64,000 nucleotides of DNA, taken from sequence record MK773491.1, one strand, 5' to 3'. The translations under genes and the position numbers were made by a program. Below are positions 57,672 to 61,756 of the stretch, one piece after another (the stretch's first letter is position 1; each line of letters starts with the position of its first letter). The notes below the pieces were generated by a model, which saw only the letters and a list, made by a program, of their open reading frames with translations, searched no databases and was not told the origin of the DNA.

Positions 57672-57703
57672 ATAAAGTACTTCTCCAAAATTTTAATACT
57701 ATG

Positions 57704-57709
57704 TATTTA
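57704..57709 (-). promoter_or_regulatory. Late promoter (TAAATA) for endonuclease VII
   Basis: ~33 nt upstream of the ATG, back-to-back with promoter copy 5. Confidence 0.6.
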
Positions 57710-57715
57710 CGATTC

Positions 57716-57746
57716 TTGGGACAAACAGCAAAAAGTGTGATATAAT
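57716..57746 (+). promoter_or_regulatory. TTGGGACAAA / TGTGATATAAT promoter (copy 5) with no downstream CDS
   Basis: Same consensus as the other four copies, followed by a structured non-coding region. Confidence 0.85.
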
Positions 57747-57751
57747 ATAGA

Positions 57752-58202
57752 TACAACTCAGTGTGGATGTGAAAGCATACAAATCAAACCTGATTCACTC
57801 GAAAATGTAGAGGACAGATGAGCAGACCACACGTGCGAAGTGCAAATGAGACCCGTTAGGAGATGGCATAGTTAGTACCACCCACGGCAATGCGGCACTA
57901 TAAACAAGCGTGTTAAGCAGATTGACGCTTGCTAGATAGACATATGAGGGACGACCTTACCACATTGCTAAGGGAGTTCAATTTGAGGCTGGCTTTAGAT
58001 CCGTCTTGAATTTGAACAACATTAAGATTCGATTGTATGGATTTTAATGTATGCGTACTAAGACTACGACCGTTGCACATGACCGTGATAGAGAGAAACA
58101 GAGCAACCCGCTTTCGTTCTGACTAGTTCAGAAATTCACGATACAATAATTCCGATGCTATCAGCGTCAAGCAATATTCAGATCCTTAATTGGGTCTTTT
58201 TT
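57752..58202 (+). ncRNA. Putative ~450-nt structured non-coding RNA of unknown class
   Basis: Dedicated promoter, no ORF above the track cutoff, ~43% GC by hand count, at least eight helices and a terminator-like hairpin with T6. Confidence 0.65.
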
Positions 58203-58208
58203 ATTGTC

Positions 58209-58232
58209 TTCATTCCCCTATGGGGGGATGAA
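58209..58232. other. C4/G6 hairpin
   Basis: TTCATTCCCC-TATG-GGGGGATGAA. Confidence 0.7.
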
Positions 58233-58260
58233 ATTGCCTCAACAAATCTCGTCAAGATAT

Positions 58261-58400
58261 AAAAGTACAAATAATAAAATTCAATCATTAAAATGAATTG
58301 AAATTATGAATAACGAATGAAATGAGTTATGAATAATTGAAAATTCTTAGACAATCGAAGATTGGCTAATCAACATAAATGATTAGAAATTTAGATACAA
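58261..58400. repeat. AT-rich, A-skewed tract with TTATGAATAA direct repeats and small inverted repeats
   Basis: 21% GC (58261-58380). TTATGAATAA at 58304 and 58327. CTAATCA/TGATTAG hairpin. Confidence 0.65.
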
Positions 58401-58424
58401 AAAAACCAGCAATAAATGCTGGTT
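58398..58424 (-). terminator. Terminator for the leftward gp26/gp51-like transcript
   Basis: Minus strand AACCAGCA-TTTAT-TGCTGGTT followed by a T tract. Confidence 0.8.
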
Positions 58425-58641
58425 AGTTTTTATTTTCTTTTGAAACTTTTTTGTTATATGCACGAACCAGAAGATCCCTTTCATTTGTTGGCATATTAAG
58501 TAGCATCTCATAGGAAGTGTTAGTGATATAGACAGATATTTCCATTAGAGCCGCTTTGATCTCTTTAACATTCAGTTCCATATCACTAAGCACTTGTCTT
58601 ATTTCTTCTGGTTTGGCAATGAGAAGCTGAATCCGAAAAAA
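58423..58641 (-). CDS. Unannotated gp51-like reading frame, probably reached by -1 frameshift from gp26
   Basis: Open from the slippery site to TAA at 58423 (FFRIQLLIAKPEEIRQVLSDMELNVKEIKAALMEISVYITNTSYEMLLNMPTNERDLLVRAYNKKVSKENKN). It ends exactly at the terminator. Confidence 0.7.
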   Translation of the reverse strand, partial: FFRIQLLIAKPEEIRQVLSDMELNVKEIKAALMEISVYITNTSYEMLLNMPTNERDLLVRAYNKKVSKENKN

Positions 58642-59474
58642 TTAGATGGATCATAACGTAGTTTGTCAATTTCCCATTGATGGTGACACTCAGAGCATTC
58701 AACATCCATTTTATGACTAATACCAATTTCTTGTAACTCATCTGAAGTTTCACGTACTTCTTTAAGTGTATTTTTTGGTAAAGAACTTACCCATTCCGTG
58801 ATAAATTCATCTTCATTGACGATTTCACCATCAGGTGTTTCAATTTTATCAATACTTTTAACAATCATGTCAAAGTTCAATTGTGTCATTGCTTCAAACA
58901 CTTCAGCAAACATTTTCTTCTTCTCTTCAAGAATTTCTTCTTCATCACCTTCCATAAAGTCAATCATTTCTGCTTTCTTTTGTTCTTGAAACATACGTTG
59001 ACCGAAATCACTGTATTCTTCCCAAGTATAAGGTTTAAAGTACACTTTAAGACCATTTGAAAGTTCAACTATTGGTTGTTTTTCAAAATATGTCATAGTG
59101 TCTAGAAGATTTTGTAGATTACGGTGGAACGCACCTTCATGACCACATTCAGGACAAGTAGTTTGAATTTCATAATCTTCTTCTTTGGAAGCTACTTTAA
59201 TAGCGATCATTAATTGTTCTACGTCATTAACAAAAAGTTTACCTGCGTCATTAACACCGGGAACACAGTTCTCAATAACTTTAATTATTGCATCACCACC
59301 AATTAGTGCATCTGGTGTATTAAGCATAATTTCATCACGTGCAGAACGTGCACATACTCCTAACTTAATACTTTCTAGTACTTCTTTATCGTACTTAATT
59401 ACATTGTTACTTGAAAGTTTAACAAAGATTTCTTCAATCTTAGTATATTTCGATAGTGGGTTCATTTTACTCAT
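58599..59474 (-). CDS. gp26: Baseplate hub assembly protein / tail chaperone (gp26-like)
   Basis: NPLSKY.K...FVKL.S, ARDEIML..PDAL, D...L..AIK.AS, CPECGH and CSECHH Zn motifs, C-terminal NFF. Confidence 0.85.
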   Translation of the reverse strand: MSKMNPLSKYTKIEEIFVKLSSNNVIKYDKEVLESIKLGVCARSARDEIMLNTPDALIGGDAIIKVIENCVPGVNDAGKLFVNDVEQLMIAIKVASKEEDYEIQTTCPECGHEGAFHRNLQNLLDTMTYFEKQPIVELSNGLKVYFKPYTWEEYSDFGQRMFQEQKKAEMIDFMEGDEEEILEEKKKMFAEVFEAMTQLNFDMIVKSIDKIETPDGEIVNEDEFITEWVSSLPKNTLKEVRETSDELQEIGISHKMDVECSECHHQWEIDKLRYDPSNFFGFSFSLPNQKK

Positions 59475-59509: not shown

Positions 59510-59517
59510 TATTTATA
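59510..59517 (-). promoter_or_regulatory. Late promoter (TATAAATA) for gp26
   Basis: Exact T4 late consensus on the minus strand, face-to-face with the promoter at 59490. Confidence 0.6.
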
Positions 59518-59521
59518 AGGA

Positions 59522-61756
59522 ATGTATATGGCAATTGATAACAGTTATGTCTTGACGCAAATACTTCAAGAACAAACAAAAGCAAATGACCATTTATCAA
59601 CCATGCGTGAACTATTGGCAGATAGTTTAAAATTACAACAGAAACAGTCCAAAAAAGGAAATAATGGCTCCGGTGATAACGGAAGTAGTGATGATTCTAG
59701 TGGAAGCGGTGGTGGTAGTGGTGGAGATAGACGCCGAAGAGGTGGAAGACGAGATCCACAACCAAACTCTAAAAAACTATTTAAGCAATTATTCGGTGAA
59801 ATGAAAAATTTCACAAGAACCACACTTGGTAATAGTGCCACTGCATCAAACGTAGTAGGCTCTCTAGGGACTAGCTTAGGATCTTTGGGTAGTTCCCTTA
59901 AAATGATCCCCGGCCCCGTAGGAGCGGCAGCAACAGCGTTCACTGCTATTGTTGATGTTGGTATGAAAGTCTATGATTACATGAATGAACAACTTAACAT
60001 GTATAACCAATTAAACAGTGCCGGGTTAACACTTCGGGATGGTATGTTAACTGCTCGTGCTGCTTCATCTAAGTCTTTTATGAGTTTAAATGAATTTAAC
60101 GAAGCAATTCAACGTAACAGTACAACAATTGCTGCTATGGATGGTCAATACGGTGATGGTGTTGTGCATTTTGCTGATTTAATGAATTCTGTACAACAAT
60201 TACAGCAAGTTAATGGTCTTTATGGTGTATCCCAACAACAATTAGCAGACATTACGGCTAAAAACTTTAAATTCCAAAAACTATATGAATCACAGAACGC
60301 ATTAAGAAGTATTAATCAGTCTCAAAGTACTTCAGAATTTGTAAACCAAATGACATATCTAAGTAAAACTGTTGGTAAATCAGTAGATGAATTATTAGGT
60401 AAATTTGATTCAATGGGCGAAACACTCGATAGTACAGTAACACAGTTTGCAATGACTGATAATTGGGGATTTGACCCAGATAAAGCCGCAGAAGTGACAA
60501 AAACTATGAATAGTGTATATTCGAGCATGGGTGAAACTGGACAGATTCTACAAAAAATTAATGCTTCTAGAATTTCATTATTCCAATTACCTGATGAATA
60601 TAATAACCAGTTTATGCAAGGTTATGCAGATATGATGGAAAGTTTGCAACGATCTGGTGTTACTGATGCTAAAGTTGTTCGTGAAACAATGGCAAAATAC
60701 GTCAAAGAGCATGAAGAACAATTGAGATTGGAATTAATTGCACAACAACGGTCTGGAAATGTTCAAGCAGCAGCACTATTAACTCAAATACGAAACCAAG
60801 AAAAATTATTCAATGATAGTAACACCACAACCAATGCACAATTAGAACAGTACACAAATAATTTTAATATGTGGATTAGTAAAACATTTACTCAACCATT
60901 TAACGAAATGTATACTAAAATGCAGTTGGGAGCTATGAAGTACTTAAGTGACCTAGCTGATCGTTCAGATGGAGCTTTTGATTTTCTTGCTAATATTGTC
61001 AAAGATGGTTATATGTATTTTAATTCATCAATGTCTGGTATGTTTGGTGTTTTATTGGATATCCCAGCAGAGTTGAGTAAAATAATTTTGGGTGACCAAT
61101 ATGATAAGATAAAAGGTGCTTTTGATAATATGATGGGGGATATTATTCAAATTCCTGCCAGAATTGGTTCCCTAATATGGGATTGGTTAACTGGTAGTGA
61201 TATGGATAAATCAAAAGAGCAACTTCAAGGTACAATTCATAATGTATTTTCTGATTTTAATAATTTTTGGGACAAACTCTCCAATGTTAAATTAAACGCA
61301 GATGATATTAAGAAACGCATGAAGGATGTTTTCGATAGCGTTAAAAAATCTCTAACTGGATGGTGGGATACCGCTAAAAGTTGGTTCAGTAGTGATGATC
61401 CAATTCCAAAAGAGGCACAAAAACAAGGAAAAAACACTCCACCAACAGCGTTGATAAATACAAATGCTACACAGGCACAGCAAACAGTTGTTGCATCAAA
61501 TAAACCGCAACAACCACCAGTACTAGCGGAACCACCGCAGTCTAAGCCTGAACGTATTTCTGAAGAAGCTAAAAAATCCGAAGAGAAAAGCCAACAACCA
61601 CAAGTACAAGCTCCATTATTCAATTATGATGAAGCTATGCTTGCTCAATTAAAAGCAATATCCAGTGCATTGGATGCAACTAATAGTGGCAATCAGCAAG
61701 TGGCACAGCTTCTTCGTCAAATTTCCGAAAATACTGAAGTAGGAAGACAAACTTAA
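59522..61756 (+). CDS. Tape measure protein candidate (gp29-like)
   Basis: 744 aa, predicted helical, Q/A/M-rich, with a Gly/Ser linker and hydrophobic stretches. Adjacent to the gp26 chaperone. Start may be 59528. Confidence 0.7.
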   Translation: MYMAIDNSYVLTQILQEQTKANDHLSTMRELLADSLKLQQKQSKKGNNGSGDNGSSDDSSGSGGGSGGDRRRRGGRRDPQPNSKKLFKQLFGEMKNFTRTTLGNSATASNVVGSLGTSLGSLGSSLKMIPGPVGAAATAFTAIVDVGMKVYDYMNEQLNMYNQLNSAGLTLRDGMLTARAASSKSFMSLNEFNEAIQRNSTTIAAMDGQYGDGVVHFADLMNSVQQLQQVNGLYGVSQQQLADITAKNFKFQKLYESQNALRSINQSQSTSEFVNQMTYLSKTVGKSVDELLGKFDSMGETLDSTVTQFAMTDNWGFDPDKAAEVTKTMNSVYSSMGETGQILQKINASRISLFQLPDEYNNQFMQGYADMMESLQRSGVTDAKVVRETMAKYVKEHEEQLRLELIAQQRSGNVQAAALLTQIRNQEKLFNDSNTTTNAQLEQYTNNFNMWISKTFTQPFNEMYTKMQLGAMKYLSDLADRSDGAFDFLANIVKDGYMYFNSSMSGMFGVLLDIPAELSKIILGDQYDKIKGAFDNMMGDIIQIPARIGSLIWDWLTGSDMDKSKEQLQGTIHNVFSDFNNFWDKLSNVKLNADDIKKRMKDVFDSVKKSLTGWWDTAKSWFSSDDPIPKEAQKQGKNTPPTALINTNATQAQQTVVASNKPQQPPVLAEPPQSKPERISEEAKKSEEKSQQPQVQAPLFNYDEAMLAQLKAISSALDATNSGNQQVAQLLRQISENTEVGRQT

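Follow-up and report, generated by a model that had tools for sequence, protein, structure and literature searches.

Does the gp26-like gene of Salmonella phage 7t3 encode one protein or two? The stretch of DNA analysed here (the window, 64,000 nucleotides (nt)) belongs to this RaK2-like jumbo myophage (MK773491, 100% identity; window base 1 is record base 186001), and four further RaK2-like jumbo myophage isolates match it at an identity of at least 99.4%. The gene encodes a protein of the T4-type baseplate hub assembly chaperone family, and near its 3' end lies a heptamer on which ribosomes could slip back by one base into a second, overlapping frame (the -1 frame; Table 1). Chaperone pairs of a short and a long form made by frameshifting are a hallmark of long-tailed phage assembly, to which T4-type phages have, to our knowledge, been an exception. 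Judged from the comparison of relatives presented below, a conserved -1 ribosomal slip very probably lets 7t3 produce both a short and a long hub-assembly chaperone from this single gene; the slipping itself, its rate, and the mechanism and partners of the chaperones are what we infer from the sequences. No description of this frameshift was found in the literature searched, a search whose coverage left most subscription journals outside.

The slippery heptamer and its conservation

On the minus strand, the 3' end of the gp26-like open reading frame (ORF) reads ...CCA TCT AAT TTT TTC GGA..., where T_TTT_TTC (58641-58635) stands with the letters and in the register that the original prediction had given. 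Residues 16-280 of the 0-frame protein are covered by PF12322 (model 4-218 of 219; E 2e-29; 103.3 bits against a gathering cut-off of 24.5), so that the family domain ends exactly where the slip site, F279-F280, lies. Among -1 motifs, the H_HH.U_UU.Y class ranks with the most efficient in E. coli (Sharma et al. 2014, PMC4066793).

The gene was compared with 19 annotated relatives whose proteins are 24-100% identical to the gp26-like protein, a set which includes RaK2, 121Q, CBB, GAP32, Yen9-04, XbC2, XaC1, a Vibrio phage, Atu_ph07, PA5oct, Phosso, SCTP-2 and XacN1, among others. With the addition of 68 viral contigs, 67 of them evaluable, 86 loci could be evaluated in total, which fall into 54, 31 and 19 clusters at 90, 70 and 50% identity, respectively. 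An alignment of gp26 3' ends across relatives had been proposed as a check of the prediction, and it bore the prediction out: a canonical in-register heptamer is present close to the gene's 3' end in all 86 loci (19/19 annotated, 67/67 contigs), as T_TTT_TTC in 74, T_TTT_TTT in 11 and A_AAT_TTT in one, and the -1 frame is open in every case. Seven amino acids are represented at the codon 5' of the heptamer in the 19 annotated loci, but its last base is T in each of them, and the same holds across all 86 loci except for an A in the single A_AAT_TTT locus. In a codon alignment of the 19 homologues, the T6 run is the sole invariant run of more than two nucleotides in the gene (7 columns in its region are conserved in at least 18 of the 19), and only 2 of 248 third-codon positions are invariant, both of them within T6, while TTT and TTC are freely mixed at the other conserved Phe columns. 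This pattern is far beyond chance, and since the invariance reaches the wobble level, the coding of Phe-Phe does not explain it. The 0-frame tail that follows the heptamer varies between 1 and 13 codons across the 86 loci, and residues 279-291 of the 7t3 protein are modelled by AlphaFold2 with a predicted local distance difference test score (pLDDT) below 50.

A homopolymer in this position might also be a site of RNA polymerase slippage, which would yield mRNAs differing by one base and, from these, the long form by standard translation. The seven consecutive T residues of 11 of the 86 loci would suit such an origin; however, six T are short for efficient slippage (review PMC5009743), and the C that caps the run is retained in 74 of the 86 loci, which indicates that selection is not lengthening it. 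Moreover, the A_AAT_TTT locus preserves tRNA re-pairing with a run of only five T, and the X_XXY_YYZ register is kept in every locus, so that polymerase slippage appears improbable. The chance is practically negligible that the split stems from faulty sequencing or assembly, or from a gene that was broken recently: homopolymers are error-prone and one unverified record, of phage CMSTMSU, has a split homologue, but the identical layout recurs in five near-identical independent isolates and in 86 loci from 19 deep clusters, and it is the position of the 0-frame stop that varies among them, not the heptamer.

The -1 frame and the proposed products

As had been described in the original prediction, the -1 frame is shut by a TAA (58644-58642) just 5' of the heptamer, opens at the heptamer and ends at the TAA at 58425-58423; 72 sense codons were counted. 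In each of the 86 loci it stays open for 173-227 nt past the 0-frame stop; a stop shuts the +1 frame within 4-88 nt. The -1 peptides of the 19 annotated loci align from residue 1 on, and an exhaustive profile search places them in a family of 691 clusters at E<1e-3. The peptide of 7t3 is modelled as a four-helix domain with a pLDDT of 90.4, the first 20 residues included, and matches phrog_18291, a small unnamed family. Judged from these alignments and the model, the -1 frame is coding from the slip site on. The expected terminator at its stop was also found, as a hairpin (58424-58404) followed by a T-run; the stem has 8 bp, including 4 GC pairs, and can be read as a terminator from either strand; no terminator was found from the 0-frame stop to 58424.

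Could the downstream frame instead be a small gene in its own right, with translation beginning at a start codon that belongs to it or by termination and reinitiation, and with the heptamer kept for Phe-Phe or other reasons? A small ORF is annotated there in most records, among them the GenBank record of 7t3 (52 amino acids, within the -1 frame), and the mechanical ORF list holds part of the frame as a 56-amino-acid ORF with a GTG start (58423-58593), which corrects an earlier statement that this list misses the frame. In addition, TAATG or ATGA overlaps between an ATG and the 0-frame stop occur in 121Q/BF17 and Atu_ph07/Phosso. On the other hand, annotators have placed the start at about ten different positions, or at none, and no conserved column of the 19-locus alignment holds a start codon, nor is a start at a conserved column preceded by a convincing Shine-Dalgarno (SD)-like motif in any of the 19 loci. 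In PA5oct, the 75 codons of the frame contain no ATG, GTG or TTG, and in RaK2 the first possible start does not come before codon 33. The earliest ATG in 7t3 is codon 21 (58581), where no SD-like motif was found, in agreement with the earlier remark that it lacks a clear ribosome-binding site. Since the peptide is conserved and confidently folded 5' of the annotated starts, the invariance of the heptamer goes beyond Phe-Phe at the wobble level, and natural fusions of the two parts are known, a separate gene as the whole explanation seems highly improbable.

With regard to the identity of the -1 peptide, gp51, gp25 and named families were considered and set aside, as PHROGs, Pfam and NCBIfam returned only the unnamed phrog_18291. 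Single-sequence hhalign comparisons of the peptide with T4 gp51 and gp25 were not significant, and its profile showed no similarity to gp25. In T4 itself, gene 25 begins at the final base of gene 26's stop codon (L089, 7801-7805) and is therefore in the -1 frame relative to gene 26.

If the gene works by a -1 slip, most ribosomes would stay in frame past the heptamer and add the 11-residue tail, giving a short form of 291 amino acids (33.7 kDa). A fraction would slip back one base on T_TTT_TTC, with tRNA-Phe re-pairing in the P and A sites, and reading would resume from 58635 in the -1 frame, adding 70 residues (8.2 kDa, four helices). The long form would then consist of the PF12322 body and the four-helix domain, with 350 amino acids and 40.6 kDa (the sum of the masses of the two pieces), and the ratio of short to long form would be set by the efficiency of the slip. 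The computed sizes are those foreseen in the original prediction (291 and about 350 amino acids).

Table 1. Features in and around the gp26-like gene of the window (window coordinates)
Feature	Position	Strand	Description
gp26-like gene	58599..59474	-	291 aa (amino acids); T4-type baseplate hub assembly chaperone family PF12322
Slippery heptamer T_TTT_TTC	58635..58641	-	0-frame X_XXY_YYZ register; F279-F280 and last base of N278
-1 frame	58423..58641	-	72 sense codons and TAA (58425-58423)
0-frame tail after slip site	58599..58634	-	11 codons and TAA; unconserved, predicted disordered
Weak 5-bp hairpin	58605..58626	-	begins 9 nt 3' of heptamer; indistinguishable from background in 7t3
Intrinsic terminator-like hairpin and T-run	58394..58424	-	directly after -1 frame stop; hairpin 58424-58404
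TATAAATA motif	59510..59517	-	36 nt 5' of gp26 ATG; possible T4-type late promoter
Divergent neighbour	59522..61756	+	744 aa; virion structural protein, tape-measure candidate

Natural fusions, paired genes and T4 gp26/gp51

The exhaustive profile search also identified 13 natural single-ORF proteins of 319-351 amino acids in which an N-terminal PF12322 part is joined to the -1 domain at the extreme C-terminus. Their pairwise identity of 25-41% excludes homopolymer errors as their origin. They share a junction motif, D-x-S-x-x-F-R-x-K-L-I, which the window splits between two frames: its first half closes frame 0 and its second half begins frame -1. Placed on a hidden Markov model (HMM) of the natural fusions, the 0-frame ORF of the window covers model positions 5-261 and the -1 ORF positions 261-324, so that the two abut. 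In-frame fusions were also sought within the close clade, where none was present among the 100 nearest clusters of the window protein; these are 273-309 amino acids long, save two truncated fragments (165 and 172 amino acids), and hence include no long form.

When every ORF of the complete 7t3 genome, taken in separate pieces, was scanned with HMMs, a single member of the family came up (E 6e-113; next best 0.11), and the same scan found two in the T4 control locus, which suggests that the short and long pair is made by frameshifting in 7t3 and by two genes in T4. Furthermore, in all three contexts available for natural long forms, from uncultivated large phages (contigs L097, L099/L100 and L101), the long form is preceded by a tandem, core-only short paralogue. 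Short and long members of these pairs are 22-30% identical, and the long gene starts on the stop of the short one. In the long members, the extension HMM recognises (E 1e-29 to 1e-32) the domain that the window encodes in its -1 frame, and their junction motif matches the two-frame motif of the window; unlike 7t3, these phages have two genes, for which a frameshift is not needed. The two predictions, that a slip site goes with the absence of a second family gene and an in-frame long form with a separate short gene, hold. Conservation of the heptamer and of the -1 peptide, the lack of a conserved start, the natural fusions and the single family gene all agree with the programmed -1 frameshift that had been put forward.

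As a separate observation, the short tandem paralogue on one of these contigs (L101:820-1704) has an in-register T_TTT_TTC that lies two codons ahead of the stop, with a -1 frame that closes at once, and this may be a relic of an earlier slip site.

T4 gp26 (208 amino acids) and gp51 (249 amino acids) are listed as hub assembly chaperones, gp51 not being present in the particle (Leiman et al. 2010, PMC3004832), and their roles have been unclear for decades (PMC3004832). Each covers all of PF12322, both match phrog_150, and they are 20% identical to one another (E 2e-6). On this sequence evidence they are paralogues, gp51 being the gp26 core with a C-terminal tail of 48 residues, which is assigned to PF28602 in precomputed annotations. 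The short and long forms proposed for 7t3 would correspond to gp26 (body) and gp51 (body and C-terminal tail), respectively: family membership is the same, the division into body alone and body with tail matches that of the inferred forms, and in both phages the gene is divergent to the hub/tail gene block. However, T4 has two diverged genes and no slippery site, gene 26 ending in TTC TTT, and the gp51 tail resembles the -1 domain over only about 33 residues, at the profile level. This resemblance was detected by hhalign, which aligned the last ~33 columns of the -1 profile with the last ~33 of the gp51 family (score 28.6, P 4e-5). Column shuffles of the comparison gave a mean of 10.4 and a maximum of 20.3, with none of 300 reaching 28.6, and a wider profile reproduced the result.

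Lambda G/GT, counter-evidence and the surrounding genes

The 0-frame protein matches phrog_150, as the T4 proteins do, and its AlphaFold2 model has a pLDDT of 86.9 and a predicted template modelling score (pTM) of 0.84. A Foldseek search with this model retrieved models named 'baseplate hub assembly protein' (E 4e-24, TM 0.84) and a total of 55 matches at E <= 1e-3, gp26 of Aeromonas phage 25 among them; no match was found among solved structures (PDB). Two Cys pairs are invariant (C107/C110 and C260/C263), which suggests zinc ribbons.

Xu, Hendrix and Duda reportedly described in 2004 a conserved frameshift in the tail assembly genes of long-tailed phages. In lambda, slipping back by one base at an X_XXY_YYZ heptamer close to the gene's 3' end gives the short gpG and the C-terminally extended gpGT (review PMC5009743). 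The gp26-like gene resembles this system in that a -1 slip near the 3' end of a morphogenesis gene would yield two proteins with a common body, in that neither product is expected in virions, and in that the gene adjoins that of a long virion protein. The differences are these: the body in 7t3 is a 280-residue PF12322 fold bearing the putative zinc ribbons, with no sequence or fold similarity to the lambda protein, the neighbour is divergently transcribed and only a candidate tape measure, and the heptamer is T_TTT_TTC. Neither the gp26-like protein nor the -1 product matched a tail assembly chaperone family in Pfam, PHROGs, NCBIfam, PDB or BFVD. Since the fold matches hub assembly proteins of myophages and no lambda-type chaperone, the likeness to G/GT is one of logic, not of family, and the equivalence drawn in the original prediction stands as an analogy, in the short and long products with a common N-terminal body, but not as a relationship in sequence or fold. 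In lambda-type chaperones the body binds the tape measure and the extension the tube protein. By this analogy, the shared body might bind one assembly partner and the extension recruit another.

Several observations weigh against the proposed frameshift and its parallels. First, RNA signals that might assist the slip were not apparent in the window, where neither a significant stimulator downstream of the heptamer nor an SD-like element upstream was found, so that slip efficiency may be low. The region 3' of the heptamer in 7t3 folds at -3.1 kcal/mol over 40 nt, a rank of 0.56 among windows of the same length from the locus, and Rfam has no family for it. A conserved downstream RNA stimulator was rejected for the window and its enteric relatives, as folding was not significant; the AT-rich enteric phages have no stable structures after the heptamer. 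Stable structures at the spacing of a stimulator are confined to the distant relatives Atu_ph07, Phosso, XacN1, PA5oct and the Vibrio phage, reaching -28 to -33 kcal/mol (z -4.8 to -7) and starting 2-6 nt past the heptamer in the first three (L015, L017 and L019), and slip efficiency may therefore differ strongly between lineages. Second, in 121Q/BF17 and Atu_ph07/Phosso the ATG that overlaps the 0-frame stop lies 3-4 codons past the heptamer, which makes coupled reinitiation possible in these four lineages; a separately initiated small protein could be made there beside the frameshift product.

Third, the link to the gp51 tail has an hhalign probability of ~70%, precomputed annotations for the family of the -1 peptide do not include PF28602, and a HMMER search for the gp51 tail in the extension was not significant (independent E-value 0.38). 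A match of the extension fold to gp51 or to a tail chaperone was likewise rejected, Foldseek against BFVD giving gp51 at E 3.7 and a 'tape measure chaperone' at E 2.6. The C-terminus described as gp51-like in the original prediction thus finds support in hhalign over the last ~33 residues and none in HMMER, precomputed Pfam or Foldseek, and because these three methods do not confirm it, homology between the end of the -1 domain and the gp51 tail is considered only fairly likely. Fourth, the neighbouring gene, a candidate tape measure, is divergent from the gp26-like gene and not on the same strand, whereas a lambda-type chaperone gene lies immediately upstream of the tape measure gene, and the annotated tape measure of Atu_ph07 lies ~15 genes away.

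With these points taken into account, we lean slightly towards a broader reading, in which the PF12322 pair would be the G/GT-like system of T4-type myophages, made either by a frameshift in one gene, as in jumbo phages resembling RaK2, PA5oct and Atu_ph07 and in hundreds of uncultivated lineages, or by a pair of paralogous genes, as in T4 26/51 or the tandem pairs. Both would be interchangeable solutions for a fixed ratio of short to long form, and the 'catalytic' role of gp51 would be that of the extended form. The two T4 proteins could then be read as belonging to a single chaperone family, one as its short and the other as its long member, both of which many large phages would still make from one gene via recoding, and the tails of T4-type phages would be linked to the assembly logic of lambda G/GT. 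Frameshift, tandem genes and divergent genes would form a natural series for the replacement of recoding by duplication, or the reverse. For annotation, the extension would need to be corrected in hundreds of genomes, where it is missed or called a small orphan ORF with arbitrary starts.

Names given to gp26 homologues in some public records are wrong, probably because of the two invariant Cys pairs. Those of Yersinia phage fHe-Yen9-04 (L011), P0159/P0177/P0244, phAPEC6 and CRJP21 appear under names such as 'Lead, cadmium, zinc and mercury transporting ATPase', 'ribosomal protein S27E', 'RNase P subunit RPR2' and 'RIP and coiled-coil domain-containing 2'. In Escherichia phage CMSTMSU (L020, UNVERIFIED_ORG) the homologue is annotated as two ORFs with one break, which probably reflects assembly quality. 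The label 'structural protein' for the CBB homologue is unsupported by the mass-spectrometry table of the CBB paper; the homologue is absent from this virion table (CBB_250 and CBB_249 are unlisted), which is weak evidence, from a single table, that the products are absent from mature virions. Upstream of the gene in 7t3, the start is preceded by a GGAG (59483-59480, minus strand) and, further 5', by TATAAATA, which resembles a T4-type late promoter; the two possibly represent a late promoter and an SD sequence, as would fit a late morphogenesis gene.

The divergent neighbour matches phrog_14121, T4 gp29 belonging to a different PHROG; the annotation of pEa_SNUABM_12, as well as a RaK2 note, labels it a putative tape measure. 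The CBB homologue (722 amino acids, a length compatible with the 123-nm tail) proved abundant in virions by mass spectrometry, with 29 peptides and 50% coverage. The adjacent tape-measure candidate of the original prediction is thus a virion protein in a relative, and the lack of any match in Pfam, NCBIfam or PDB leaves it a candidate only. The genes of the locus comprise gp47/gp46-like SbcCD, endonuclease VII, the gp26-like gene, the divergent virion protein and the gp20 portal. Between the terminator and the endonuclease VII gene (57700-58400), five tiny ORFs of 31-55 amino acids are annotated, the reality of which is doubtful. Outside the window, among the many tRNA genes of 7t3, a 'tRNA-TERM' is annotated at MK773491 338202-338283 (L095:39484-39565), possibly a suppressor-like tRNA.
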